From Vitrella brassicaformis CCMP3155 (lineage: Eukaryota; Protista; Chromerida), in the NCBI GenBank assembly GCA_001179505.1, contig CDMY01000170.1:1-64000 (forward strand): a stretch of 64,000 nucleotides of DNA, given 5' to 3'. A program made the translations under genes and the position numbers. The notes under the pieces are model-generated. The model was given only the letters and a program-made list of their open reading frames with translations. It had not been told where the DNA came from and made no database searches. Within the stretch, counting starts at the first letter, position 1. Each line of letters begins with the position of its first letter. Of this stretch, positions 2,932 to 24,827 are shown one piece after another.

Positions 2932-5900
2932 TCAAGGCAGATAAGGGGCCAGCCATACTTCCTCTCGCGCCTTTAAAAGAGTCCAGTAGTTGAGAGGCTG
3001 TGGAATGAACCGCCGCTCTGCTGCTCGATCACCAGGTCCCGCTTCTCGTCTCAGTCCAGCCGCATCAACAGGAAGCCTAATTGTGGCCAGAGGGGCTAAG
3101 GGAGGGAAGGAAGCAGTCCCGTGCAGAGCTAGCGAGACAGAGAGCCGCGTGTCCCCCTCTTCGGTATTTTCCCTCTGTGATGAAGGGGCGATGCACAGCT
3201 GAAAAGGGGGCAGTAGGGAAGAGAACCGCTGCTGCTTGTCGTGTTGGTGGTCGTCCGCAGTCGTTGTCCTGCAGACCAGCCTCTCTCCCACCAAACACTC
3301 CAGCTCATCATCCCAGCGCACGCCAACACTTGACGACGGTAAACCAGCGATCACCATGTCAGCGACACAGAAGGCCCCCTTTGTGCTGTGCTCCTGGCCT
3401 TTCCTGAGAATCCTCCACTCGAGCGCAGAGCTCTTGTCGTGCGTAGCCTTGTGCATGATGACAGACACAGCCGAGAGGACCTCTGTCGCCATGGTATGCT
3501 TTCCGAGATGCAGAGCGGGAAGCATATCTTGCGATATGTCGACGGGCAGTCTCTTGAGGCACTTGAGCCAATGCCGATGGTAGCCGATGTCTCCCTGAAT
3601 TCTTGCGATCAACTTCCATGGAGAGAGCTTGCCGGCGAGGAGCGCGGCGACCGTCCCCTCGATGCGATCACGGCTGGTGTCGTCGGCTGCGATGGATGGG
3701 TGGAGTGTGGGTGCGATAGGCGAAGATAGAGCCAGCCAGAGGGGGGCGTCAGCATGGTCGTCTGCCGTCTGCTGGGTGGTTGACAACAAGAGCTGGGTGA
3801 AGGCTGGATGCATGTGGTATGCCTCTGCCAGGCGATCCCGCAATGCCTGATCAGTACATGACACATCAAGGCATGCACACACGGACGAGTGACGATGGCA
3901 TATATGCACCCACCTTCAGGTAATCGACAATTCGCTCCATCTCCTTCTCAAAAATCTCGATGAGCGGCACCCACCGCATGACTCTCAGCCCTTCTTCCCT
4001 CCTCTCGCCCTTCACAGGCCTGACGGCCCTCTTGATCACATACACCAACCGCTCCAGCACTCTTCTGATCACCGCTCGCCACACACGTGGGCTGACGATG
4101 CCGGATGAGGCTGGTGCAGGAGAGAACATTGAGGGAGGTGGCTGACCGAGGGTGAACTTGGGCCTTGATGATGGGGCGGGAGGGGCCAGGAGGAGGACCG
4201 ACAGGGCGTCTGTCAGCCGCCTCGTGAAGTCGAGAAGAGATGAGGGATCTGCAGATGGGAAAGAAAGAGACATGGGAGCTTCTGGTGCTGCTGGGGTCCT
4301 GAGGCTGCTGAACGCGGAGGAGAGTATCCATCTCATGCAGGCCTCCACTGCCCCTGTCCCTTCGTCGATGTGTCCGGCTTCCCTGCCAGTGCCGTTGCCG
4401 TTTGCCCTTTGGGTGAAGACGCGCAGTGGGGGAAGAGGTGGAGGCAGCAGCAGCTCAGACAAATACGAGGGGCCGGTGGGCCTCTCGGGGTCAGCAACTC
4501 CTACTTGTGTCGAAGACGTGCCCTTCGCTTGGGTGTACCTCCGCCTAACCAGACATACAGACATATGTATACACCAAATACACCATCTGTCTCCCCCACC
4601 TCACCTTTCCATAAGAGGGCTTTGTCGTGCCGGGGCGTCTTTCGGCGGCTCTGGCTGCATTGAAGGCTTCCTCACATACAAAGGCTCGTCACTGTTGACG
4701 GGCAGTAGCGACGCGCCTTCGACGGCACGCACCATCTCTCTGCGGAAGAGATCCACCGCTACACCCAGCCAGTGCGAGACCAGAGATGTATCGACAGCGT
4801 CGAGCCATCCACAGGACTGTAGTGTCGTCTTGACAAGCAGCCATAGCCGCCGGGAGAACACCTCGACTGACTGGTGCTTCTTCAGCCTGCCCCCGGCAAG
4901 TGGCAGGGGAAGAGCCTTCATGAGTGCCGTGAAGTCATGTTCCTCGATGTAGCTCAGCAGCTGGGCGAAGAATGCCTCCACGTTCACTATGGCACTCGTC
5001 AGCTGGGCGAAGGAGATGCTGATTTGGCTCCGTCTCTGTGTGTGCATGCTCAGCAAAGTGAAGAGCCACATCAAGAGAAACACGACCCTCTGGCTCAATG
5101 CGAGTACGCCAGAGACCACCTCTCGAGGCCAATCGGAGGATGCACCATTGCTCTCGGCGACTGGAGGGGGCGGCGGATTGGCACCCACATGCTCATATGC
5201 ACTCGCAGAGGGATAAATAGCCGCAGTGCTCCTCACAGCGGATGAAAGGATCGATGCCGCATCAGCAGCCTCGGAGACACGGCAGTAGAGTGATTGGCGG
5301 ACGATCGATGGAGCCAGAACCCGCTCTATCTGCAGGGGAGAGGCCACAACGAGGCAGACTTTCGCCTTGTTGCCAAGCTGCGGTGCGATGGGCCCCTCCC
5401 CCCTGCAGATCTCGATTGGCCAGAAGGCGTCCACGGGCATGTGGGAAGGAGGGTCTGAGCGCAGCCTCTCTCGTACCAGCTGCTCCACCAGCTCTATGAG
5501 GGTAATCGGGATATCCGCATGTTTGTTGCACGCTCGCTTGGATGACCGATGAGCGGTGACTGCACACACGGATGGACACAGACGTTGGATGCTGTTCGTG
5601 TGGGCAGAGATGTCTGTCCATCATTTTGTCACCTTCCAGCCCATCTTGCCGTACGTCCGCATCACACGCCAGATGAGCGTCATGGACTACAACTAAGGTG
5701 CCCTGCTTCAGAGCCTCGCCAACATCCCCGGCCTTGCCCATGCCGGCAATGCCCTGCTGCAAGGATAGGCGGAGACATGGCATATCGAGCGTAGGGATCG
5801 CCTGTGGAGGCCCGTGTATGATGATCGGTGAAAAGGGCAGTAGAGACGTGGGGGAGAGGTGGCTCTCGATGGACCTGGATATGAACGACAAGAAGTCGTG

Positions 5901-8900
5901 GGAAGAGCCCTCAGGCTGGTCCAGGAAGCTCCCCAGGTCATTCTGCCCGCCGTCAGTCCACCTATGTCTCCAGCTCCTGCCTTTCAGAGCAAAGCCCACG
6001 AGAGCCCTCAGAATCCTCTGTCGATCGGCCGGGCGCAGCGCACACCCCACAATGGCGAGAAGCAGCATGTGGGTCGAGCAGTCTGCGGTTGGAAGCGGCG
6101 CTGGTAAGTCGGGCAGCTGCTGTGTCGTGTTGTCTTCCAAGATTAGCAGCATTCGCTCCGCCCACTGGCGCCACAGCCTCGGCAGATGCCGGAAGCGATG
6201 TGGCCACGAGTGCATTGTCGGCGCGTCGCCGTCCGTCACTCTACGCCTCCTGCTCGGCGATGACGCTCGAGGGCTCTCCTCATCTTTCTCCCTCAGCAAT
6301 CGGAGAGACGGTACCATATCCTCCAAGTCGCTCAGTATTCGGAAGACCATCCAATTGTGGCTCAGCTCGCCAAAGTTGACGACAGCCAAAGCGTCTTCAT
6401 GTATATCGGGTGCCTCTCCCGTGTTTGCGACGATACCCGCCTTGTGGATGTCGTCTGCGGTGATGCGGTGGTCCCCCTGGGCCTGTCTCATTTTGAGTCT
6501 GTACATGGGGTCCAGCTCAAGCTTGTGTCTCTCTTCTCTCGTCAGCACGTCGGGCCGCGGCGAGAGCAGGTGCTCCACAAGAGACACGTCTTTAAACATG
6601 TCGTAGCGGGACATGTCGTGAGAAAAACGCAACAGAGTTGCATTTTCCGCAGCTGAAGGGATGTTGCTGGTCCACGGGAAGCCGAATGCCAGGCACATCG
6701 CGAAGTCGTCATAAAACTGCGGGGGATGCCGCATGGCGAGCAGACGGAACAATCTCGATCGAAACGGCTCGGTGCTGCTCTTGGCGGTCTCAGCTGAGGT
6801 TCGTCGGCCATTGCGATTCTCCTGCCCCTTCCTCTTGTGCTGTGTGTCGGGCTTCTTCCCTTGCGGACCACCACCATGTGCACGAGTGTCTTCGTCCGCC
6901 GCCAGAGCCAGATGGACCAGTCGCTGGCAGGCGTCCATCGACGTCGGTCGGGTATGGCTGCAGGAGAGATAGCACATAATGGTGTGGACACCCGTCTCTA
7001 TCAGCGGAAGAAAGGTCTCGAGGGAGTCATTGATGATCATAGTCTCCAGCTCATCTGATCGCCGAAGGGATGCGTGGATCTCGTCATGCTCATTCTGAAG
7101 GTGCAAAGAGAAGTATACACGTGAGACCATTTTCTGTGTGTGTAACTCTCCCACCTTCAGCTGCGTCAGTCCTTCGAGCACATCAAGCCCCACTTGGAAG
7201 CCGGCCGTGCGTCTGGTCGCCTGCCCGTTGCCCTCATCGCTTGCCTCATCCAAGACCCCACCTTTCAGCAGCTGCTCGTGAAACTGATTGGACTCATATG
7301 TCCTCACGAGGTAGTCCAGCAGCTGCTCCTTTGCATAGTGTAGCTGATGATGCGACCGAGCGCCCTCGGCAACCTGTCGCAAGAAACAGAGGCAGAGAGG
7401 GACTCTGTACACACATATGTCTCTCGGGCTTACAGCTTTGATCTTCTCTTCGAGGAACTCCTTCTTTTCCTCGAGCATGAGGGCCTCCCAGACGCATTTG
7501 ACCACCGCATTGCGGCCCCCCGAGAAGTCAACCATTGTGCCATAAGGCGACCAGCGATCAATCACGTGACGTCGCTCACTCTCGCCATACAAGAGATAGA
7601 GGCGGAAATCCGGGTGCACTGGGGTGAGGTCATTCTGCAGAAGTATGGTCTGCATGCCATCAGTGGCCCAGGATCTGTCTCGATGTGCTGCCCAGTGGTT
7701 GTACGACAGGATGCCCTCCTTCTTGATGCGATCTGCGTCGATTCCCTCGGGGTCCAGCCATTCTTCGAGCTGTCTCAACATCTGACGGCCTTCATCCTCG
7801 GTGATCAGGTGCGTGGCTCGTTTGAGCAGCAGAGTGATAAGGCGCTCCGCCTCCTGCAGCTCGTCTGCGGGCATGGATGGCGTGGTAGAGAATTCGATGA
7901 CCAGCGGAGTGCCTGTCTTCAGGCAGTAGTCGATGGCCTGAAGGAACATAAAGGCTCACGAAGAGAAGCCTGCACGTGTGGCCAGGCCTCACTTTCAAGA
8001 GGGATGAGCTCCTCAGACCAGGAGTGCCCAGCGATACAACAAGAGGCCGAGACACGTCTTCCTTCAGCACCGCAGACTTTGCCTGGGGTGTCTTCACTCG
8101 TCCAATGCCGCCCTCGGCCACGCCTCGCATGTGACACCGAAGCAGAAACTTCATGGCCATATTGAATGGGTCGTATATCAACGGCGGCAGCCACCTTCTC
8201 CTTCCCGTCTCCTCCATGCTTGGAGGGACAGCGGACCAGTGGATCCTCAATGCACTGTCGAATGAGTCTTCATCCGGCAGCAACCCGTCAAGGGCAGTCC
8301 AGAAGCGGTACAAGCTTTTCGTGGGCAGAGGAGCGGGGGGAAGAGATGTGACCAGGTCAGACGCCTGTGTGGGTATGCCCATGGCTGTGAGGGCTTCCCG
8401 CCACCTGTTGAGGATCAGCAATCGGAGGGGGTACGGAAAGGCCCCGAGCAGGTGCATGTTGCAGGACATCAGAAGGGCGTCGCTGAGGAGGAAGCGACGC
8501 TGGTCGAGACTGTGGGTCAGCAGAGACAGCCACCGGTCCTGAAAAACCCAGACAAGCGATTCGTCAAACGGACAGCCTCCTGCGATATTCGCTGACCTTT
8601 TCTGTTTGCAGCATACTGAGCGCTCTGTCGAGCCTCCCACCCCTCTCATTGACGTCGGCCAAACTCTGCGTGAGGCTCTCCCTCTCGGCCGTGGCGTCGA
8701 ACAGCTTCCGTTGCAAGTCCGCCAGCGTCTCGTTGGACTGTCTTGCATCCTCTCTGGACTCCTGCGTGACCTCTGCCAACTCACTGTGCGCGACTTCCGT
8801 CGCTGCAAGTTCGCGTCGCTTCTTTTGAAGCTGATAATAGACACACATGGTGAGACATGCGCGGGACTGTTCACAAGGATCAGAACACAGCTCTCACCTC

Positions 8901-11900
8901 AACAGCTATCTCTGCAGCATCAACGATGGCTTTGCACCACACGTAGAGGGCCGTCACAGCAGGGGTGGCAGCAGCAGATATCCATTTGAACGCGACGCCC
9001 GTCGCGAGCTCCTTGGGACACTCGTCGAGGCACCGCTTCAGAGCAATTAGCTGGCCCTCTGTCATCTCCTCTTTGTTGAAGGTCGTGAGCTTTCTGGCTG
9101 CACCACGCGCGCCTGCAGGTGTCTGCATGAAGGCCCTGCTTAAAAACAGATTCCAGAAATCCTGCGGATCGCCCTCAAACTCGGCCTCGTCTGCAGCGTG
9201 GAATCATTGTCACAGTCACACAATAGCTCGTCAAGATGTCGCTTACTCGTCTTCGGTTCCTCTTCTCCCTCTGTTGCGTCGACTGCTGCTGCAACTGCTG
9301 GTGCAGGCCTCCTAAGCTTGAGGCCTAGCGCCACACACGTGGTCTGCACGATCTTCTTGGTCTCATTCTTTGGCTTCTTGATCGCCGACAGAGCATCGAG
9401 CTCCTTCCCAGTGGCAAGCCGCTCGGCAACTATCCTGTCAGCGGCACTGCTGGCTGCCGACAGGCGCCGCGAAAGCAAGTCACACTCTGAGGTGAGTGTC
9501 TCCATTTGCATGCGCTTTGTCTGTTCCTCGAGGTAGATGCCGGTAGACAACTTCTGTTTGAGCCTGTCGTTGATCTTCTTGGCGGCCTCCATCTGCTCCG
9601 TGTGGTCCTCGATGTAGGCGCTGATGCTCTGCGTGTCACAACAGAGCTTAGAGACACCTCGTCGAGTCTTTGCTCTTTTATTCTCTAGCGCTGACCTTCA
9701 GCCGCGGCGTGACGATGTTGACATATTCCTGTAGTCTGTCAGACTTCCCCTCAGAGGCTTCGATCAGCTCCTTTACACGCGACAGCCTTTCACATGTCCT
9801 TGTGTTGTGGTTCACACTCAGTGACAAAATGTCGCACGCCATCTCCACGATATCGATCAGCCTCGTCGGACTCGCACAATAGGCCTGGACGCGTTGAAGG
9901 TCCTCCAGCCGCAAGAACGGATCTGGCATCGTGAAAGGGCCGTATCTGGCCTGCGATGGCCCACTTGCGATGCAAAGCGGGTTCCAGTCATTCGATGACA
10001 CCAGTCCCCTCAGCTCTGCCAATGGTGTCAATCTTGGCGTGCCGGCTTGGTCCTCTTCGCTGCTTTTGCGACGCAGGTCATCCCACATTGACGCAGCGCA
10101 GGCCTTGAAGGCCTCTTCGGTGACTTGGAAGCTCTTGAACTCGGCAAAGAGGCGGCCCAGAGCCTTCGTGATCAGCGACACGGCCTCTGTCGGCTGGAAA
10201 GAGAAAGCCATCTGAGTCTGGCTTCGCTGAATGGTCCACTCGTAGACAGTTGTGATCGCCGTGTCATTTGCTTGGGCTTTCTTGAGATGTGTGAGATGTC
10301 TCGAGGCAATGTCGATGCACGCAGGCAGCGGCAGGGGATTGAAATAAATGACCTGGGACCGCGACGGATCGCATAGGGAGTTGCTCTCCATCAGTTGCCG
10401 AAGCGGCTCAGATCTCGGCTTCACTTGTGGCTGTTTGCCTTCTTGGAGCAGGATATCAGTGACTCGGGGGTCTCGATCCTGCTTGGCCGTTGCTGTGATG
10501 ACTGCAATCGTGACAGTGGGTAAGAAGAAGTGGTGCATGAGAAGGGACATCAATGTTGCTTTCGACAGCCACTGAGACGGCTTGAAGTCTGAAGGCTCGG
10601 AAAGCAAAGGCTCGACCGCCCGCCAGAATGCTGCTTCTTCTGCATCCTTTGCCGCCTGCACCTCGGCTTCGCGGCCTCGTCTTCGTTTCTTCTCCTTCTC
10701 GCCGTCCTGCTTGCGTCGCTCAAGGGATTTCTGATGCTCAACAGCTCCCTGCTCCAATGCGCGTCGCACCAAAAGGTATGTCTCGTCGAGACAGTCGCCG
10801 ATAGCGTAAAGCAGGCCGTTCAGGTTCTCCCCAAAAGATGGGTTGTCGTCCAGCAGGCTGCCCCAGGAGCCGCCATCGAGCAGCTGAGTCAGTCGCTCGC
10901 GAAGGAAAGGCAATGCAACTTCCTCCGCACGCAAGGCGAGCACCAACCCTCGACAGATCTGCGCTGAGTCGTTGCCTCGTTCGGCTTCAAGTGGCAGATC
11001 CGCATGCCAAACGAGGGAGAGGGAGTCAAGAAGGATAGCCGCTGGCGCGTCACTCTCTGTTGAGGTGTATCGGCGCTTAAATGTCGTGATGACGGTATCT
11101 GGCAGGTGAGACAGCTGCTGCAGCCGACTCTTGATGCGCTTGAGACCAATGTTGACGGCAGTGGTCAGCAGCTTGTCTTGCATCAGTGTCCACTGCCTCC
11201 GGGCCATCTCCTCGCGATTCTCCGCAAGCACATCGGGCCGAGACGTGACCTCATATCGGTCACGCGCATATTGTGCAATCTGCTCCTCTTTGCTCGGCGT
11301 TGTGCCGTCAGTTCTGTCTCTGATCTCGTCACCAGCTGCAAATACGCCGCCAATAAGGGCAGGGAACGACAGCACTTTCAGATTCAGCGCTGAGCATGTC
11401 ATGTGCAGCAGAGTCTCTTTGCCGCTAGCTGCTGGGCCTGCAAGCACGATCGTGCCGCCTGGTGACGGGAGGCTGGTGAGAAGCTGCTGGAGTGCCGGAA
11501 GGGAATGCTGGACAAAGGTCTGTGCGAAGGGTGACGCACGGCTTCCCCGATAAGCCAGATCGACATTGTCCTCACTCGTGGCGGCTGTTGCTGTGTCTCT
11601 TGCTCGGGGTTGCCCGCGGCACACGGTTTGTAGCTGCTTCACGATGCCCTGCGGGCCTGACGCAGGGACGATAGATGGCACCAGACACGAGTCGCCGAGT
11701 GCTTGCAGTGAAGGTAAGCCGATCACTTTATCGCCTTCCTCCATTCTGAGGTATCTGCAGACCTCGTGCTTGAGTCTCCGTACCTCGCCGAGGTCGTGCT
11801 CCTCTTCAGCGGTGAGCATCTCCAGGACTTTCTCTTTCATGTTGATGCCGAGCAGCTCGTCAGCCAAGCGGCCCAAGCAATTTTCCAAGCAGTGAGCGAG

Positions 11901-14900
11901 AAGGGGCACCGTGAGAGTCTCCTGCACGTCGCTGTCTACGTCCTCGGCGACACTGATCCGTCTGCCGAGCAGGGAGCGGATCGTGTGGTAGGAGTAGGCA
12001 AGCCAGTGGACCGTGACGGACGCAATTCGAGTCGAGGCAGGTATAATCGCATTGAAGGATGCACGCACGAGCGAGTGGATCAGCTGGAGCATCGCGTGGC
12101 CCCAGTTGCTGTTGGACAGATGAGCTGCCGACCGCACGAGGCTGGAGTAGACGTGAGAAATGTCTCCTATCGTCAGGGGTGGTTCGTGCAGCTGCAGCAT
12201 CACCCCTTTGGAGAGCAGGCGATGATGAACGGCAGATCCCCCGGCAGACATCGCAGCGACAAATCTCACTCCGTCCACCTTCTTGTAGGCTGACGCGAAG
12301 ATCTCACAAAGAGACGGCTCCATGCCGGCCGTGTCTCTGCATCCATTGCCGCTACCGCTGCTAGACGATGACGTGCTCCCCTCCTCACGGGGAGGCAAGT
12401 CAGTCATGAACGAGGCAGTGGACTCCCACACACTTGGACGCCGGCTCATGTAGCCACTCGTCTCGACAAACTGACGGATCCACTCGCTGCTTTCGCTACC
12501 AGGCTGGTCGATGGAGAGATCGTCAATCATCACCGCTAGCGTCTGTTTCAGCGGAGGCGACCACACCTCCTTCGCCGATATGTCTTCGCTCTTGAGCGTC
12601 AGGTGGCTTTCGATCTGTCTCTCCATGCGTGCAGCAGACAGGGGTCGTTTGTCAGACACGAGAGTTGGAATGACGGCTGGGTGGCTCTTTGGCATGCACA
12701 CGGAGCCGACAATAGCCGGGTCGCCGCTCTTGCGCGCCTCACTTGGGTCCATCAGAGGAGGAATGATCCCTCGCGCTGTGTGCCGGCCACCATGCTGCCA
12801 GTCGTAGGCAAGATGCCTTAGCAGGGTCGATTTGCCGCTGAACGCTGGCCCAATTATCAGTGCTGGGTGCCTGTTGAGACAGGGAAGGCAAAGCTGAAGC
12901 AGAATGTGGACACGGATGATCGATGGGGTGGAGAGCAGGAGCCGATTCGTGAAAGCAAGATCCGCGTACTCCGAATCGTGCCCGTCCCATGGCCTCCATT
13001 GGCTGGCAGAGATGGTTTGCGTGTCGTCGTGGCTGTCAGCGGCCTTGTCTCTTACATGATACTCCCACACGAAAGTGTACCTCCCACCCTCGCTCTCCAT
13101 CGGCGGATTCTCAATCTTCGTTGACAATGGGGGCAAGAACACACTTCTGAAAGCGTCAACTGTCAGAGAGTCGGTCTTCTCTGTTTTTGCTGTCTCGGCT
13201 TCGACATGGATGCTCCCGTTAAGTTTGGTGCTGTCGATCTCCTCGATAATCTCCCAGAAATGGTCCCAATTTGTCTTTGGCTGCGCTGATGAAAGAACTT
13301 GTGTGTACGGTAGGCCAGCTGACATTGCCATGTTCTTAGTGAAAGCCTGCTGGGGAGCTTCTTTCGCCATCCAGACGAGAAGCCGCATGTAGCTGTCAAT
13401 GGCGCGTGCTGTGCTGAACGGGGGACCCGTAATTTCCATCGGCTGCAGCGAGGATGGTGAAGGCAGCTCAGGCTCTTCAGGTCCTTCTGATGGCTGCCGC
13501 TCTCCGTCTTCGGCTTCTTTGTGCTCGTTTTCCTCTCCATGGCCATGCACTTCTTGCTCTTCTGTCTCGTCCATTTCTCGAACGTCTTGCACTTCCTCTT
13601 GCGTCTTCTCCGTAGCTTGGCCCTTGTCTTGTTCTGTGTCAACCTCCCCTTCTCCCTCTGTGGGCCCCTCTGCTAGCACCTCTGCTGTCTCATCCGCTAA
13701 CTCCACTGACGATGCTGCGGGGGACGGAGTGGCATATCGCAGCACTGTCTCCTCTCTGTGAACAGACCTCTCCGGACGGATCACGCTGAAGATGGCCTGG
13801 GAGGCCGCAAAGAGGAGTTGCTTCTCAATGGTATGGCGGACGGTCTCCAGCTCTCTCCTTATTCGGGCCTTGACCCGCAGGCGCTGCTCCTTTTCGGCCT
13901 CCTCGCTTGACGCCGCCCCCTCAGTCGCGGGCAGAGAGACGCTCAGCTCCTCCACTCTTGCAAGCGTCGCCAGCCATTGGGTGGAGAGGCCGGCAATGGC
14001 GCTCGAGTACAAGTTGCTGATGATCGACACTCCTTGTGCGCCGCCGGCCCATGTGTGGAAGCCCTTGCCGAGGATTCTCATGAGCGGTGGGTCTTGCTTG
14101 GTGAGGATGTGATCGATCAGCCGAATGCATGGCTGCAGGATGGTACTGGTGAAATGCAGGACCAGAGGGCGAAAGACGAAGGAGGGCTGCAGCTCACGGG
14201 AGACACACGAGACGATGCGGCCGGTGCAGTCTTCTGCGCTGGGGGTAAGTGAGAGAATTCCCAGCCGACCACACAGCTGGTGACATCAGAAAAAGGAGAT
14301 AGACACTCATCCACAGCACTTCCACATGTGCTTACAAGAGCAGGTGACGCATTGGCGAGGTCAGTCGTTTCGAACAGCAGCCGAACCTTCTTGATCCAAT
14401 CCCCTCTCGCATTGACGCTGCCGTCACTGGACAGCTTGATCATCTCATCAGCCGACGGCAGGATTCCGTCACTGATGCCCTGGCCACCTCCAATCGACGA
14501 CGCCTTCAAAGACTGCCCTGTCTCCATCCTCGACGGGCCTTTGGCGAGCATGGAAGCTTGTGCACAGAATTGGCTGGCCCTGCGGCCCATTCTGCCACCT
14601 CCGTCCCATGCTGAGGTGCTCTGTCTTCTATGCTGGCGATCGGTCTTGTGCTTGTCTGTGTCTTCGGATGGCTCGTCAAGTTGCGACTGGATGCGGTCGA
14701 GCAGGCGGGAATAATGTGACGCCTCTGGCGCGTCACATGAAGGAAGAGCCCCATCAAGGGATAGCCAGCACTGGTGCTGCAGCCTGGCAGATGCGATGCG
14801 CTCGGCAAAGGGGGTCATAGCAATGAACTGCTGCCGAAATCTCCGTTTGGCCTCGGACGCTTGAGCCGCTTCCCTCCTCTGCAGCGCCGACATCATGCTA

Positions 14901-17900
14901 GTGCCGCTGCGGGTTATCATCCTTGCGGCCCTGTCGCCCTCTCCCCCAGTATGCTGCCGTTCTGGCGCTCTTTGCGGCACTGGCGGGCATTCGATCGACA
15001 GCAGGTCATCTTGCCACTGGTCGTAGCTGCGGAAGTTGTGAACCAGCGGCTCGACGAGCTCCAGATAGTCAGCAATGACCTGCTTCAGACCCTCATGCAG
15101 TCCTGTTGGCTGAGGCATTGGCGGCTTGGTCTTGTCGGCCGTCTGGTAGTGTGTGACGATCTTGCCCGCGACGAAATCTCTGTGGGACGTGGCCTGCAGG
15201 TAGCTGGTGATGAACCGGATCTGGTTGAGGATGGACGGGAGGATGGATGGTGCTGCAGCGTGGGTGCGCGCGCGCAACGATCCTGCACCGCTGCCCGCCT
15301 CAGTCAGCGTCACCAGGGTGCGTTCGTCACCAGAGAGCTCCTTGTGTGTGTAGAGGTTCGGGAATGATCGCCACAGCGACACCCCTCCTGTCCTGACTGC
15401 AGCTGGAGAGACATGGGGGCTCTTGTCGGCCTCTTGCGTGTCTTCGTGGGGCGGCGTGGGTGCGATGGAGAGCACTGACTGTCGTGCTGGGCGCATGGCC
15501 TTCTTCCGAAGCACACCTTCAGCGGCATACATGACGCTCTCGAGGAACAGCTGATGCAGCCTGTTAATCGCCATGGCCAGCACAGTCATCACAGTCGACT
15601 TGCCGACGGACGACGACCCGACGATAATGACACCGGCTTTTGTCTCCGTCCACTCGGCGAGCGACAGGCACCTCTGGACGAGCACAGGGGACACGACGAG
15701 GCCGAGACTGCTGATGACGTCGGGCAGGATGTCGGCCAGGGCTTGCATCTTAGCAGACACCAGGGACACGGGCTCTGGATCGACGGCTGTTGCTGGCGGT
15801 GTCTCGATCTCTGCGGGGAGGGAAGCGTGCAGAGCTCGTTTCTTCTCGAGAATCCCCACAGTCACGTCCGTTGTCTGCGCCAAGACCCCGTCCAGATACG
15901 CCTTCACTTCGTCGGCTTTATTCTCCATTGTCGCGTTAGTCACGAACATCAGGGCTGCTCTCAGTGCATCCATCTCCCTTAGATACTCCACACTCTCGGA
16001 GACCACAGCAGGTGTGGAGTTCAGATACATCATCTGCTTGTCTCGTGCTGCCTGATCAATGACGATGCGGGCCGCTTGCTGACGCAGCTGCCCCTCTCGG
16101 AAATAAAGGCCTCTGTCATCGAAAGTCTCGAAGAAGGCGATCACATCGCTTGGAAAGCGTTGACACGCCGTCGGTGTGAAGCCTTTCTGACTCATCATGA
16201 GCTCGAGGACGGCATACGGGGCGGGTGAAACAGTGGTGACGTTGCGGAATGCCTCGCTGAGTGTGGTTGGCACGTCGCGTCGGGCTGACGACACCGATGT
16301 GCAAGCAACAATGGTCCACGGGTTGAGGGGCACTCGTGACTCGCCAGTCACAAACGGGATGTCCACCTCCCTCTCCTCACGGATGCTGGCCACGCGCACC
16401 GCATCCAGTGCCTGAGTGACGGCGGTACATGTGGCCGGCTGCAGTAGATGGCTGTCTTGCAAGACGAACATGCCGCCCATCTGCACAGCAGCCGACAGCA
16501 GCCGACAAAAGTCTGCCGCAGGGGCCAGAGACGGAACTGAGAGAAGCAGGCGCCCGATCAGCTGCGAGATCTCTTTGAGTGCCTGGCAGTCTCCCTCCGA
16601 CATGAAGTGCGGCAGGTGTCGAGAGTGAATGGAATAGAAGAATGCCCTGTGTGGTGCCGTGTGGGAAGTCGACGGGATGAAGTCACATGCTTCAGGGAGC
16701 AGCTCGAAGCCATACAGCATCTAAGACAATAACGTGTACACAGTAGCATGGGATGTATTTGATTGTTGCGCGTTATCTGCAACACACCTTAGTGGGATAG
16801 ACGGCCACGACGATGGCCTCCAGTAGCGTGTCCTCCTCCCTCTCCGCTTCTGAAGCCTCCTCCGCTGCCTCCTGCATGTCCCACGACCGAGACATGGCCC
16901 GAGTGAAACACCTGCTGGTCAGTCGAGACAAGGCACGGACGGACACAGGAGCTGGTTTTTGATGATGGTCCTGCTGCTGCTGAGCTTCCTCTGTGTCATG
17001 GCTGGAGCTGTCGTCGTCAGGAGGGCCAGTGCTCACATGCTTTCCTTGGGATGGGGACGATGGAGCTTCAAGAATGCCCAGGGCGGCTTTTGGCTTCGCC
17101 TTTGGCTTGGGCTTCCTGTCCGCCTGTGGCTGCAGGAGGCCTGCAGTGCTAGGAGGCAGCCTATCGGGGACATTTTCCTCAGCCCTCTCGTCCAAACAGT
17201 AGACACGGAAGCATGACAGCCACTCAAAGGCGCCAAGCCCGCCCGTCTCCGCGAGAGGCAGCAGCTCACTGGTCGTGTCTTTGAGACCGGTGAAGAGACC
17301 GATCATATGCTCCATCTTGCGACACAAGAGCTCTTGGCCCCTCGTCAGTGGCGCGGCCACATGAACCTCCGCAGCCGCTTGTGCGCCCTCTTGCGGTGGC
17401 GCCTGTGTCGTCACGATCGACCTGGAGCGGCCGACGGTATCCGTGACCGCCTTTGCCTGTGGGGTCTTGTACATGATGCTCTTGCGGATAGTGGGACGTC
17501 TCGTGCGCTTCGCAGTCTTGGGCTTGCTGGGCCACCGAAGGGATCTGAGCTGATGAATGAGCTCTTGCAGGACGCTACTCATGTGGCTCTGCACAACGGA
17601 CAGTCCCTCCTTCTCCATCAGTGTCTCGCGAGTCTTGATGTCCGTTGTCAGCCCGCTGACCACTAGAGCTCTCTCCACCTCCCCCGTCCAATGGGCCATC
17701 ACTGCAATCAGAATGACCTGCCACGGATGGCTGCATATCGCCTTCAGCAGCGCGCTCCGCTGCATAGCTGCCGCAACGTCGCCCGCGCGCTCTTTGATTC
17801 TCTCCTGGAGTTCCATCAGCTTTGTGAGACACGTGACGACGGCCGTCTTGAGATTCTGCTTGATAGAGTCGTCGATTTTTCCCATCATGTCGGTCACGCT

Positions 17901-20900
17901 GGCAGGCTTGGGAGTGACTGACAAGAATGGCGATGCGGGGAGGGTGATCTTGCGCGTCAGGAAGAGGGTGTCCGAGCAAGTAGTGAATATCTGTGTCACA
18001 CTGAGGCGCGTCTCGTCCATGGAGCTGTCGTCATCGCTGTCCTCTTCTAGCTTGACACCCCGAATGCCCGGGAAGCAGCAAGCGATGACTCGAAAGAAGA
18101 CCGGCCACTGGCAAGCGGAGAATGAGGTAAACAGAGTATGTAGGGCCTCATCAGATGGTAGCAGCAGGCGGGGGTGGTCTCGGCGTTGCGATTCCAGGCG
18201 GTCGAGGAGTATTGTTCGGATGCTATTAATCTCTTGCAGCGCCACCCGAGCGTTGACCGTCCAGTTTTCGATCGCTGGGTGCTTGAAGGGGGAAGGATTG
18301 ACTTGAGACATTGCCTGATGCTGCAGAGAACACACAAAGAAAAGTGGCTCTTTCCGTCTTCCTCCTGTGTCAACTCTCACCTGTCTGAACAGACCATCGA
18401 CCTTCCTGAATCGGTCAATCACTGTCCTGCCGAGCAACCTCCCAACCAGACTCGTCTGAGCATCTCTTAGCTGTTGGATTGTCTCGGTACTCATCCCATC
18501 CGGACCAATCGCCAGCAAATATTGCAGATACAGCGGCATGGCCTGGACCCACATTCGCAAGAAGTCTGTCGATATCTCCAGTCGGTGTACGACATACGCC
18601 AGTCGGTCGGCGAAGAAGTGGGCATGGCCTGACTGTCGCAAGCCCTCACACACTCCAATCAGATGGTTATATTTGCCCAAGAGGGATACGCCGTTTGTGA
18701 GCAGCAGGACTGTCGGCAAGAGTCCAGACTCCTCCCCGCCTTCAAGCTCCATATCAGTCTCAGTAACTGATCGAGATGGGCCACGAGAGACACTCCTGCT
18801 GGTCAGGCGCTCGTCAGCCAGACCGTCCGCGGCCGAGACAATGGCGCACATGCTGATCTCCACTTTGCCGGCAGCGGCGTGCTGCTCGATCTGCATCAGG
18901 CATTTCTCTGCCCACAGCTCCTTGGCGCTTCTCTCGGTGAGCCTCTGTAGAAAGACGACCCTCGGAGGCACATGGAATCGATACACGAGCATCTGCGCCA
19001 GCGTCAAGTGGTCGGGATTGAGCTCCTCTTTGACCAGTCTCGATAAGACGGACCAGTGGCGCGCGAGGAATCCCTTGAAGCGCAGGCACGCGATGAGGGG
19101 CAGGAATGCCTCAAGCTCTTTGAGCTTGTCAAGCGTATTGCGCGCCGCGCGTGAAGGAATGGGAGCGCTGGTGAATGCCATCTTGAGGCAGCGCTCCGTG
19201 ATTGTTCGCCACGAGGCGAGGGTATCCTGGCACTCCTCGAGAGTCAGGCTGGTCAGCGGCCCATGACACCACAGTGTCTCGGCGCTGTACGCCTGCTGAG
19301 CTGACGTCCAGAAGTCTAGGTACGGCTGGAGTGTCTTCCATGCTGTCTCCATCTCCAGTGGAGATTTTGTCTGCGGGACGCCCAATGCCAGCTGTCTTGT
19401 GACGAAGGTTTCATACATGTCTTGGCATTTGTCAAGGTCGTCCTTCACCCGATTCACGCCGTCTAGTGTCTTGTCGACCGTATCGGCGTCCAATGGCTTT
19501 GTGCCGCTTGGTCCGACTGATTTGAGCTCTCGGATGGCATCCAGTGACGCCGCAATCGCTCGGTTCAGGGAAGTGTGGTCATACTCGAGCTGGTACGTGA
19601 AGAGCTGCCGGCGAGAAATCAGGTCGACCTGTACGAAAGGGAAGGAGGGAAGGAATGCGAGGTAAAGAGGCAGCTATGCGCTGTCGATCACCTGCTTGCG
19701 TTGGGCGAGCATCCTCAGCTTGTTCGGCGAGCCCTTCAGCATCACGTGCTTGATGTGCACAGACATGTCTACCTTGATCATGCGGGTCTCTGAAACGACG
19801 AAAGAGGACCACGATATCCCGCATGAGTTGCCAGTGCACAAGGCTCACCGACCGAAAAAGTCGTAGATTGTCCTTGCGTGCTGCACCAGAGTGTCCAAGA
19901 AGAGCCCCTCTCCACCTGTCTCATAAAGCTCTCGAACCTTCTCGTATTGCCTCGCCAACGTCTCGATGCTCGTCACGTCGTCCTCCAGCCTGCAACAGAA
20001 GTAGACCATCATCTGCCCATCCTGCATCGCTGGCAACCTGTCTTATGGCTCACATGCTCACATGAGGGACAGCGCATCGAAGCGATCCAAGACATAATCC
20101 GATAAGGAAGAGAACTCCTCAACGATAAAGGAAGACAGACTCCTGAGCCGCTCGTCCGCGTGCGCAATGAGTCTGAGCCTGGCGTTCTGACAGTTGACGG
20201 CGAATAGGCTCAGGTGCACTGTTGATGCTGAGCAGCCTATGATGGCATCTTTTTGCTCCACAAGGCTGTCGTACTCGGCCATCAGAGTGCCTATCTCTTC
20301 GTTACTGAGGTAGATGCGCTGTGTCAGTTTTGTTTCGTCCACTCGAATGAACTTAGGGAGCTTAATCGCGTCGTAGCCCTCCTGTCGGGTGTGCACCTGC
20401 AAGCGCAAGAGACATATATGCTATTATGGATAAACATTCCCTGTCAGCATCATACCGGTATAATCTTGACCCGCAGCGAAACTTCTTGTTTCAGGGCGTC
20501 CAGCCACGCCTTCTCTTGCTGTTCAAGAGCCTCTTGTTCCAGCAGCTTCGCCTCCTCATCACCGCTGCTCTCCTCTTCCTCCTCTTCGCTCTCGCCGCTG
20601 ACTTCACTGCCTTCTTCCTGTTCATCGACTGCATACTCATGTATTTCGACCTCCTGAAAGCCGACCCCTCTTCGTGCATGCTCGTCCTCTGCCGGTGGCT
20701 GGTCATCTGGCGCCGGCTCTTCTGGCGGCTCAGTTGTTGATTCTGGCTCTTGTTCGCGTGTCTCGTGGATAAGTGGGATGTCATGCGTCTCCCGATACCA
20801 CCGGCTGATGTACTTTTCGATCACCTCGTGGAACAGCTCCCTCACTTTTTTCTCCGTGTGAGGTCGCCGCTCTGCCTCGAGCATCCGTATGGCCTCTGCT

Positions 20901-23900
20901 TCTTCGCTGGTCGTGTCCATTGCCGTTTGTGTCGTGTCTCGTCTGATAGAGAACTGCCTTTTCACGTGCGCTGTGTAGTCCTGGGACAGAGGGAGGCCCA
21001 GTTTCTGCTCGAGGATGGATGACAAAAGCTCCGGGTTTGTTCGAGAGTACATCGAGGGGTTGGACAGGATGAAGTTGGAGTCGTCGAGGTAGCTCTCGAG
21101 GGCGTCTTCATACAGAGTCTCCAGCGCCTCCATTCGCCGGATGTCGAGCAGCAGTTGTGACGCGAATGCCTCTGACGTGCCGATCAAGAGCGAAGAGAAG
21201 CGGCAGTAGTTGTTTCTGAGGGCTCTGACTGGCATGAGTCCATGCTCCAGCATCGACTTCACTCCTTTGAGGATCGCCTGCAATTCTGAATCGTACAGGT
21301 CGCTGGATGGGAAGTGCTGACAGTCCTCGGGCAGATCCGTTACATACCTGAATGACACATGGACAAGAAGCACGTTGAAAGGTCAGAATTACTGTCTGCG
21401 TGACTACCTGAGAATCGACTGGGTGAGGCTCCTCAGTTCATTGACGACATCAAGACAGTGCTGGAAGATGGTGTGCGTCAACGCTTCAACCACCTCCTTC
21501 TCTGTCGGCCGCATAACTAGTCTCTCCTCATCTCTGCCGCCCCTGCTGTCGTCGTCCTCGCTCCGCGCCGTCACCGCGACCGACTGCTTGTCGGCCTCGA
21601 TGGCTGCGGAGCTGTGCGAGTGTGTCTCGCTCTGGCACATCACACTTGTGGCTGCACTTGATGGTGGCTGGAAGGTGATCTTTGGGATCGATGCCTGCTC
21701 AATGACCTCCCCAAACGCGTCGACGGTCACTGTGTCTGTCGCTAGCGAGACCAGGAAAAGGCTGGAAGCTCGCTTGCGATGTAAGGTGATCAGGGCCATC
21801 GGCGAGATTTCTTCACAGAGAGCCGTCTCCTCGCTGATCTGCTCTTGTTGCAGATCCTCATCCCAGCTGTGCCACTTCAAACGGTCGGCAAAGTCAGCGA
21901 AAGACAGCAGCAACAGTCGCTTAAATTGTGCGGCGCCCATCTTGTTGCCCAGCTGAAGACACGCAATCACTTCTGTGGGCACCTCGGAGACCTTGCCCCA
22001 CCGGTCAACGTCCTCCGGATAGGCTTGTGCGACGATGTGCATCGTCTCTTCGATCACCCGCTTGCTCCACAACTCTTCTATTCGGTTGGCGACAGACACT
22101 CGATGCTTCACCTGGGCGGACTCAAACACCGACACCGACAGCGGCATAGAAAAGATGCTTTCAGTGTCGACCGAGCCGTGCTGTGCGTCCTTTATCGACT
22201 GGCGTGGCGGCGAGGGAGGCCGAGAAACGGCTGGTCCGATCGCCTCGGTCGGCAGGCGAATGAATGCGAAGGAGCGGTCTCTTCCGAGGTCGTCAAAGGT
22301 TGTGAGGATTTGCTGTGTGACGGCCAGCAGGGGCGCATGTGCAACCACAAGCCGGCGGCTCAGAATAGGCAAGGCGTGCCGAAATGCCCGTACATCAGGA
22401 AGAGACGGCCGTCGCTTTGGCTGAGCGATCGGTATTGGGGGGAGGAGACGCAGTCGGTGTCTATGCAACACCTCGTTCCAGCGTTGGTCGAGTCGGAAAG
22501 ACAGCTGGCTGTACGCAAAGTACCACTCCACTTGCAGCAGCAAATCAACCAGGTTCCATCGGTAGCTCTCCATCTTCAGATGTGCGCACTCCTCGGCGAG
22601 CGCACTGCCCTCCTCTGCCACAGAGACCGTCTCCACGTCCATCCTTGTGAACTCCCCGGCCTTCTTCTCCCTCTTCTCCGCCAAATCACGCGGTGTCATG
22701 CCCTCGGGACACGAACCATCTCGCTCGTAGAAAAGAGGTCCACTCGGTCGTCTCCTCTCTGGGCTCAAAAACCGTCCGCCAGCATCTTTTCTTGGCCGGA
22801 AGCCGGCACTGTCGAAGCACAGGGATGGCGGTGGGAGTTTGGAAGACACGAGAGATCGAATAACAGAAGGGGATAGGCCGCAGAGCACCGCGATGTTGTG
22901 TAAGCGCGCGAGAGGCAGGCGATACGGCGGCATCACGTGAGTCCACTGATTCTCCGTGATGTACAGATGGCGTCGCAGCCTCTGCTCGGCTTCCTCACGG
23001 CGCGACGCAGCCGCGACCACGTGGGCAGCAAACTCTTGTGGGTCATCTCGCTGAAGCCTGAGCTCCATCCTCGTGACCGACCGCGGCTGCCTCTCGTATT
23101 TATCTCTCCATCTGGCGCCCTCCTCGCCTTGCAGCATCACATACTGGATGAAGGCACTTGTAAGCGGATGGGTGGGAGGCATCAAGACAACTGTTGCCGT
23201 GCCATGGTACGGCTGGACAGAGACTATGTGGCACGGCGTCCATAGCATTTGTGTGATGGGTTCGACGGGCCATGTCTCCGTTACCGATCGGGCTTCGAGC
23301 TTCAAGGGAAGCTGCGTCTCTCCTGCAAATGGGCACACAAGCCATCAACAGACATCTGGATATCCGAATGCTTGATCGATACCTACTTACCGAGTTCGCC
23401 AGTGTGCACGTCATCAAGAGTGGCAAAGGACACGCCCCCCTCGATTTGCGTATCGAAGTACTCTAATGGAAGCCGTGGTCGGCTCTGCAAATCTTCCAGC
23501 AGAGCGTTGAAGCGCAAGGACGAAGGCGGCTCGGCCATCGTCTCTGTCTCAATCTCTGACGCCTCCTCCAGCCGCCCTCTGGCTGTCCTCGCCCTTTCCC
23601 GCTCTCTGAGCACCGTCAGTCCCTTGACAGCAACAGGCGCCCTCTGTGCCAGAGTGATCGACACCGGCGGCGCACGCGAAGACATGGGGCGGGACGATGG
23701 CAGAGGCGAGACGGTGCGGGGGCGAGGGCTGGCCGGCTTACTTTTACTCCGTGCTTTTGGCCTCGCCTGTGGGGTCGTCGACGTCATCCGACGAGGGTAC
23801 CAGACGAGGGGAGGCACCGGGGGGGGCCGCCGTTGATGGCTGCGAGGCCCAGCCGATGCCGACATCGGACGCTGTCTCGTGGCCGCTTTCGGGGGCGCCG

Positions 23901-24827
23901 ATGACGCGCTCGCCGGCCTGCTCCGTGCGAAGGGGGTATGCAGCCCCTCACTGCTGCTGCCCCCATCCGTGAGCACACTCTCCCTCCCGCCCCTCTTAGG
24001 CAGGGGGGTTGGCGTAGTGGTCCTGTCGCTGGCACTGGCTGCTGGCAGCGGGGTGGTGTTGGTCGGCGTGTGCGTCGTCTGGGGAATGAAGGCGGTCGAG
24101 TCATCAAACGATGGCGCGGCTGACGGGGGGCGACGACGGGCCGCTGGGGGTTGTTCCTCCTCCCCTCCCTCTTCCCTTTTACTCGCCCTTCTCGCTTCTT
24201 TCTCCATTTCGTGTAGCTCGGTCATGCCGCTGCCCATCCGCCGTATCTTGATATGATCGAAGGGCAACTTGGCCTGACCAATCTCAACTTTCTCTTCACG
24301 CAGATTTCTTGCCCACGGCATCGGGGGAGGGAACCGTGGATAAGGCGGCGCCTTCGGGGCGGTCTTGGGCCGCTCCCTCGGTGTCTTCATGACCAGCTGA
24401 GGGGGAATGATCACTGCAAACACATAAGACCGATTGAGATGCGCGATTGTGAAGGTTTTCGCTCACCTTTCCGTGGCATCAGCTGAAACCTCCGCCTCAG
24501 TTTGGCTTCGTGAGCCACTTCCCACGGCCGGATGTAACTCGAGGTTTGCAGCACCAGCTCCGGCACATCAACGGCGCTCTCCTCCTCCTCTTCATCGGAC
24601 TCTCGTTTCTCCCTCTCTCTCACCACCTGCAGCTGATCCCTGAGCGTCCTCTCGGCTTTGCAGAGTTCGTTGCAGGCGCGCTGCAGGCGGACGAGGCGGC
24701 TTTTCGCTGGACCGTATCCTCGGAATCGCTCGAGGGTCTTGTCGGCCGGGGGAAGGGAAAGAGCACGGCGATCACTCATCGTCGAGATCTGAGGTTGCTT
24801 GTGACAGCTTCTCCTGGGGGCGTCCAT
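2932..24827 (-). CDS. Giant divergent axonemal dynein heavy chain (DNAH1-like), multi-exon, roughly 6,500-7,000 aa (estimate)
   Basis: Consecutive minus-strand ORFs join through GT-AG introns (checked at 24466/24414, ~19.6-20.4 kb, ~16.78/16.72 kb, ~14.33/14.28 kb, ~9.2 kb). DNAH1-type N-terminal motifs: LPLEYFD and RMELRLQRDDPQEFAAHV..RREEAEQRLRRHLYI. Pre-AAA1: FEWLSCFRVY and YGFELL. AAA1 remnant: PLNPWTIVACT..RRDVPTTLSEAFRNV. P-loops: GSSSVGKS (AAA2), GPAFSGKS with VMIDDL (AAA3), GPAASGKE (AAA4). Stalk/MTBD: KKPKNETKKIVQTTCVALG, DFW, ALYVWCKAI. AAA5: RRWLPPLIYDP, VHPDFRLYL. AAA6: GEALKQGTLVVVHDAHLA. Stop at 2932. Confidence 0.88.

Follow-up and report, generated by a model that had tools for sequence, protein, structure and literature searches.

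Dyneins move by turning over ATP at the AAA1 module of the heavy chain. What, then, is a dynein heavy chain gene whose AAA1 has lost its catalytic motifs: a dying copy, an unusual motor or a maintained protein with another task? We addressed this question for a gene of the chromerid Vitrella brassicaformis CCMP3155 that lies in a stretch of 64,000 nucleotides (positions 1 to 64,000 of contig CDMY01000170.1, assembly GCA_001179505.1; hereafter the window). The window is GC-rich (~58%) and eukaryotic in character, with short GT..AG introns. The gene occupies 2935-24779 on the minus strand, running from a start at 24779 to a stop at 2935, and comprises 22 annotated exons and 6810 codons over 21.8 kb by exact exon mapping, which bears out the frame of about 20 kb proposed in an initial annotation of this DNA. 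Its product is CEL93447.1 (A0A0G4ECI3, here P0001; 6810 amino acids), publicly named 'Dynein heavy chain linker domain-containing protein', to which the exon query 16720-14117 matched with 100% identity over residues 2473-3269 in an exhaustive HMMER search. All whole-protein analyses are based on this public gene model, with its exons as joined there. With moderate confidence, we interpret the gene as encoding a maintained dynein heavy chain that descended from a DNAH1-type single-headed inner-arm dynein and in which AAA1 is now pseudo-active.

AAA1 lies wholly within exon 11 (14336-16720, minus strand; residues 2473-3267), one uninterrupted open frame that encodes the large and small subdomains of AAA1 and most of AAA2, as delimited by translation, a Pfam AAA_6 match and coding periodicity. 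The AAA_6 profile (PF12774) scores 34.6 bits on this module at a cut-off of 25.2, which indicates that the module really is AAA1. We compared it by phmmer with dyneins of solved structure in the Protein Data Bank (PDB) and by MAFFT with three canonical heavy chains. Three independent alignments gave the same result, a module that is colinear with canonical dyneins and anchored on both sides, at an identity to these dyneins of only ~15-22% (MAFFT). The anchor YGYEYLG reads YGFELL (16714-16697, minus strand). Both methods place the Walker A motif at 16586-16609 on the same strand, where canonical GPAGTGKT is replaced by HFMSEGDC, with the P-loop Lys changed to Asp, the Thr to Cys and the glycine-rich loop lost. 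They likewise place Walker B at 16445-16468, where ACFDEFNR has become FVLQDSHL (Asp-Glu to Gln-Asp), and the sensor-I strand at 16277-16309, which reads VACTSVSSARR and lacks the Asn (MNPGYAGR aligned to CT--SVSSARR; both minus strand). Where a functional AAA1 ATP site has GKT in Walker A, DE in Walker B and an Asn at sensor I, the Vitrella protein has GDC, QD and no Asn. The initial annotation had reported these three losses; the peptides that it quoted are present in the minus-strand translation of 14117-16720, and the alignments agree with it.

Around the lost motifs, the structural residues of the module are retained in the alignment: the YGxE anchor, the Gly of GAW, the Arg of AGR, the LP..L..FR segment and the Tyr of HYD. 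The helix after Walker A, canonically TETxKDLAKA, is kept as CQALKEISQL, the Arg of the ..LFR.. stretch after sensor I is retained as AFR (16255-16238, minus strand), and an Arg is also present at the sensor-II position. The module thus appears to have kept its fold around a site that has become pseudo-active.

An unrecognised exon with a GKT motif, on whose absence the initial annotation had staked its reading, was searched for in the surrounding DNA. Apart from AAA2 (15619) and AAA3 (12851), no [GA]xxxxGK[ST] motif occurs in any of the six frames of window 2000-26000. The intron that immediately precedes the AAA1 exon (16721-16787, minus strand; 67 nt, GT..AG) lies between ...YPTK and MLYGFELL... 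and contains no P-loop in any frame; with only two P-loop motifs in the six frames, it hides no rescuing exon. A hidden exon that restores the AAA1 P-loop was rejected on these grounds and on the colinearity of AAA1 within one exon.

At the other end of exon 11, an intron of 149 nt with a GTAAG donor (14187-14335, minus strand) cuts the SPATVSRCG motif of AAA2 after SPAL, as judged from the sequence, the alignment and the loss of periodicity after 14336. The Arg of VSRCG is, we presume, the arginine finger that is inserted into the AAA1 pocket; read-through of the intron would give VSTCG in place of VSRCG, and the Arg is absent either way. The coding periodicity of exon 11 ends at the annotated donor 14336. 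The intron itself starts with VSTCGSAV...GW, which resembles the canonical VSRCGMVY...GW that follows SPAT, and an alternative in-frame intron of 65 nt (GTGAGC at 14197 to CAG at 14133) would keep the VSTCG residues. The start of the 14187-14335 intron may have been coding in the past and survive as a relic, or it may reflect alternative splicing.

Outside AAA1, the domain map was obtained by searching a profile of three canonical dyneins against the Vitrella protein. The profile recognised the tail end and linker (residues 1400-2190), AAA1 (2545-2669), AAA2 (2790-2862), AAA3 (3660-3728), the stalk (4966-5199) and AAA5 (5339-5442). Together with a P-loop-like motif at the AAA4 position and a microtubule-binding domain in the stalk, these parts stand in the canonical order of linker, AAA1, AAA2, AAA3, AAA4, stalk with microtubule-binding domain, and AAA5. 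Pfam matches above cut-off were DHC_N2, AAA_6, AAA_7 and MT; AAA_9 remained below. The best-conserved part is the linker (17838-19340, minus strand; residues 1644-2122), which matches DHC_N2 (PF08393) with E=8.4e-22 and 78 bits at a cut-off of 31.9, covering profile positions 5-400 of 403; the three-dynein profile scores 68 bits on it (residues 1400-1805). The microtubule-binding domain and the coiled coil by which the stalk returns to the ring (8404-9391, minus strand; residues ~4844-5112, across small introns) match the Pfam MT family (PF12777) with 32.4 bits at a cut-off of 24. Their alignment is colinear, with conserved landmarks and one insertion, and the region from stalk to AAA5 matches 48 PDB dyneins. 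The protein has the linker, the AAA1 module and the coiled-coil stalk with microtubule-binding domain by which a dynein heavy chain is recognised.

The N-terminal ~1360 residues, the 'tail' (20453-24779, minus strand), have no recognisable similarity: residues 1-1400 gave no Pfam match at E<0.1, no PDB match at E<1 and no usable match in the ESM Atlas. The word 'axonemal' in the initial annotation was a guess, as the tail resembles no dynein tail; the protein might act in the zoospore axoneme or in another microtubule array.

The initial annotation had also held that the P-loops of AAA2 to AAA4 survive and that the stalk and C-terminus are complete, and both statements stand in part. AAA2 has an intact Walker A, GSSSVGKS (15596-15619), found by alignment and by the motif scan, and the three-dynein profile scores 24 bits on the module. 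AAA3, which is matched by Pfam AAA_7 with 28.7 bits at a cut-off of 25.8, has an intact Walker A, GPAFSGKS (12828-12851), found in the same two ways, and a Walker B, VMIDDLSI (12510-12533), that aligns with the canonical axonemal VFVDDLNMP (IDD for VDD). The third P-loop did not hold up: at AAA4, the aligned GPAASGKE (11415-11438) keeps the Lys and has Glu in place of Ser/Thr, so that it is P-loop-like only. The rest of AAA4 aligns poorly, and residues 3268-4200 have no PDB match. AAA5 (7299-7919; residues ~5256-5442) was placed by the three-dynein profile, by hhalign (E=0.003) and by AAA_9 with 20.8 bits, which is below the cut-off. These modules are all on the minus strand, as are the C-terminal 1111 residues (2935-6467; residues 5700-6810), presumed to contain AAA6, the lid and the C-terminal domain. 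The protein does have the stalk and the microtubule-binding domain, but sequence cannot show that its C-terminal third is complete: neither the PDB nor Pfam gave a match to residues 5200-6810, and sequence-based methods recognised nothing past residue 5442. In a search of the ESM Atlas, which uses a protein language model, the best matches of residues 5700-6810 were all Dynein_C, AAA_lid_11 or Dynein_heavy clusters (score 0.88, 174 shared features), a lead and not proof that points to a dynein C-terminal region. An assignment of AAA6 by LSLQQG...HDAHLA against SLGQGQG...LQNCHLA was tried and is not claimed, as the local alignment reached a z of ~1 against shuffled sequences.

The state of these modules bears on whether the protein could still be a mechanochemical enzyme, an unusual motor in which the driving hydrolysis moved from AAA1 to AAA3 (or to AAA2 or AAA4). 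Walker A and the DD Walker B of AAA3 do align with canonical axonemal dyneins, AAA2 has kept its Walker A, and the force-transmitting linker and stalk are the best-conserved regions. But there is no catalytic Glu in the AAA3 Walker B, which reads DD like the two axonemal reference dyneins aligned with it, and AAA3 has lost the conserved Arg that canonically stands in the GGGR stretch behind sensor I. In AAA4, the Ser/Thr of the P-loop is missing, and no dynein is known to stroke without AAA1. We regard such a relocated motor as very unlikely.

A non-motor dynein with a pseudo-active AAA1, which we favour, could work as follows. An AAA1 whose P-loop Lys has become Asp would neither bind nor hydrolyse ATP, and a ring whose AAA1 does not bind ATP would have no ATP-driven power stroke. 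An always-empty AAA1 would approximate the apo state of dynein, with a straight (unprimed) linker and high microtubule affinity, and the apo-like protein would then tether microtubules, either statically or under slow regulation. At AAA2, nucleotide could serve as a structural cofactor, and AAA3 possibly as a regulatory switch. By analogy with the apo state of canonical dynein, the most likely function would be that of a static microtubule tether or regulator; the role of scaffold or brake proposed in the initial annotation is, in the same way, one that we infer.

The reading frame bears on whether the gene is alive. Its 6810 codons contain no in-frame stop, at a rate of about one stop per 32 codons (~3% per codon) in the other frames, and the longest single exons comprise 1497, 946 and 795 codons. 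In exon 11, G+C content at third codon positions (GC3) exceeds that at second positions (GC2) in the reading frame in each 240-nt window of a sliding analysis, including the AAA1 core. At an AAA1 identity of 15-22%, a frame under neutral decay would have filled with stops; decay is therefore unlikely for a gene that has kept its frame open and two P-loops exact. These data argue that the CEL93447.1 gene is maintained and protein-coding, not a decayed pseudogene, and a maintained non-catalytic dynein, as the initial annotation had it, is still the best reading of a frame that stays open for 6810 codons and shows, through the AAA1 core as well, the GC3 periodicity of coding DNA. The protein is ~2600 residues longer than ordinary heavy chains (6810 versus ~4200 amino acids), owing to many insertions. 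Its UniRef100 entry has the species-level label 'n=6 Tax=Vitrella brassicaformis', which hints at identical transcriptome-derived fragments, as a label and not as a test.

Some details of the gene model are less firm. Four introns (18315-18380, 7371-7430, 7095-7154 and 23213-23284) have lengths of 60-72 nt that are multiples of three, and the reading frame stays open across them; they might just as well be coding, and the public model may under- or over-splice there. At window position 18912, a C>A difference (plus strand) that would change Trp to Cys in the linker exon was present in sequencing run X3 and not in run X1 of the same sample; either heterozygosity or an error of assembly could account for it.

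Several results weigh against our interpretation. Neither an orthologue nor a paralogue of the protein was found in any of the sequence collections searched. In the exhaustive HMMER search of the AAA1-AAA2 exon against 1.84 billion representatives, only the protein itself and a shared segment of 49 residues were found below 1e-10. Of three word-index searches (linker with AAA1; C-terminus; residues 1380-2200), two were blank and the third returned the protein itself and two weak matches to canonical inner-arm dyneins, and a metagenome scan for relatives was blank as well. The run search yielded no RNA run that contains the locus; the matching sequencing runs were DNA assemblies that include the intron, and one possible RNA run came up with no word matches. 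An AlphaFold2 model of residues 2440-2830, made from a four-row alignment, had a mean predicted local distance difference test score (pLDDT) of 41 and was unusable, so that retention of the AAA1 fold rests on sequence. Extreme divergence affects the whole motor and not AAA1 alone; AAA4, AAA6 and the C-terminal domain could scarcely be detected, if at all, so that loss of function may extend to more of the ring. Finally, the apo-locked, strongly binding state is an extrapolation from the mechanics of cytoplasmic dynein.

Part of this evidence would also suit a ghost gene or an annotation artefact, in which no functional protein is made because the dynein copy is dying or has lately died, or because the gene model was mis-joined. 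Such a gene could well be a single-species orphan from which no RNA evidence was obtained, and the large low-complexity insertions, the short pieces of the gene that have been copied into other Vitrella gene models and the one doubtful intron boundary (14187-14335) fit it too. It is difficult to reconcile with 22 exons that join 6810 codons without a stop (with exons as long as 1497, 795 and 946 codons), with GC3 periodicity in frame throughout, with perfect P-loops in AAA2 and AAA3 of an otherwise near-saturated sequence, and with a fully colinear domain order. We consider a ghost gene or artefact improbable.

Two segments shared with other Vitrella genes were located. A sharply bounded segment of 138 nt (15325-15462, minus strand; residues 2892-2938), which is part of a large insertion in AAA2, has 90% DNA identity to L002:5940-6077. 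The latter lies in an unrelated gene, CEM20390.1, annotated as 'Sushi domain-containing protein' and carrying a Pfam match to the dynein family AAA_8; both genes read the segment in frame. Dispersed short elements may thus have contributed at least some of the additional sequence in the Vitrella dynein. The second segment, 15968-16162 (residues 2659-2723, in the small subdomain of AAA1 with a lineage-specific insertion), resembles L001:11221-11391. This dynein piece of 65 residues corresponds to the C-terminal end of CEM39975.1, with 55% amino acid identity, about three-quarters of the nucleotides identical and a deletion of eight codons. The MMETSP transcriptome fragment P0005 shares a 90% protein cluster with CEM39975.1, and no further dynein sequence was found at the CEM39975.1 locus (L001).

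From which dynein could a maintained heavy chain of this kind derive? Among solved structures, the linker is matched only by single-headed inner-arm dyneins: DNAH1 with 59-64 bits, DNAH3 with 43 and DNAH7 with 31. In the region from stalk to AAA5, DNAH1 is again the top PDB match with 35-44 bits (42-44 at the microtubule-binding domain). As DNAH1 is the best PDB match in two separate regions, descent from the class of DNAH1 (inner-arm dynein d, IAD-d or IAD4; DHC8 in Kollmar 2016) is suggested, by a ranking of scores and not by phylogeny. DNAH1 and the Vitrella protein share the same domain order. They differ in that DNAH1 has a catalytic AAA1 and ~4250 amino acids, whereas the Vitrella protein has no AAA1 Walker A, Walker B or sensor I, ~2600 extra residues and an unrecognisable tail.

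The closest functional parallel comes from animals. DNAHX is a non-motile heavy chain of sea urchin sperm with an origin in the outer-arm alpha chain; it has kept its Walker B and is locked in the pre-powerstroke state with ATP bound (Thr to Val in Walker A), and its authors report it absent from protists (10.1101/2025.01.18.633724). It resembles the Vitrella protein in being a full-length heavy chain whose AAA1 is not conserved and which has numerous insertions, and it has been proposed as a template for the autoinhibited 'phi' particle (10.1101/2025.01.18.633724). The Vitrella protein might, by this precedent, be an assembly or transport chaperone that pairs with an active heavy chain in a phi particle and silences it during delivery to the flagellum, for which its own wealth of insertions (6810 versus ~4200 amino acids) could be cited in support. 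The two proteins part ways in several features. The phi particle needs the ATP-bound, pre-powerstroke state in which DNAHX is locked, and with Asp at the P-loop Lys, an ATP-bound state of the Vitrella protein is unlikely; its Walker B reads QD. The microtubule-binding domain of DNAHX is disrupted by insertions, whereas its landmarks are kept in the Vitrella protein, and the nearest relatives of the latter are single-headed inner-arm dyneins and not outer-arm alpha chains. We therefore consider the chaperone explanation unlikely. With no outer-arm match in the linker, the P-loop Lys lost and the microtubule-binding landmarks retained, the Vitrella protein is not a member of DNAHX.

A second animal family, DNHD1, lacks the catalytic residues of the AAA1 Walker B and is a class-11 'orphan' reported to be specific to metazoans (PMC5100056). 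It is this description as metazoan-specific, and not a sequence comparison, that sets DNHD1 apart from the Vitrella protein. Domain searches of the Vitrella protein returned no specifically close family. Among protists, 'orphan' heavy chains have been catalogued and the Vitrella repertoire annotated qualitatively (Kollmar 2016; Wickstead & Gull 2007), and divergent heavy chains have been noted in Plasmodium in protist dynein surveys. The protist orphans resemble the Vitrella protein in being taxonomically isolated, intact and highly divergent. They differ from it in the tail, which in the orphans is reported to align with a member of the nine classic classes and in the Vitrella protein is unrecognisable. 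In the parts of the protist dynein surveys that we could consult, we found no description of the AAA1 state of a Vitrella orphan heavy chain.

Taken with these comparisons, the Vitrella heavy chain most likely belongs to the non-motor dyneins and has an origin separate from that of the two animal families of this kind. It would represent a separate protist case, with an AAA1 lesion that appears more complete than in the animal non-motile dyneins, and is best filed as an independent, inner-arm-derived 'AAA1-dead dynein heavy chain' whose lesion probably leaves AAA1 empty. More tentatively, and as a possibility that we would not yet rely on, it may be a third kind of non-motile dynein that evolved independently in chromerid algae: derived from the inner arm, with AAA1 permanently free of nucleotide, bound tightly to microtubules in a rigor-like state, gated at most by AAA3 and forming a passive cross-bridge or a brake within the flagellum of zoospores or within another microtubule array.

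AAA1-dead heavy chains have been recognised only recently (DNAHX in 2025, and DNHD1 by re-evaluation) and only in animals. The value of the present case is limited for now, as it is a single-species orphan known from its sequence alone. If such a third kind is real, dynein pseudoenzymes would be a recurrent route in eukaryotes and not a peculiarity of animals. A protist dynein with a dead AAA1 that has kept the linker, the stalk and the P-loops of AAA2 and AAA3 would be a natural experiment on which ring parts a non-motor role requires, and would also show what a dynein with an empty AAA1 does on microtubules.

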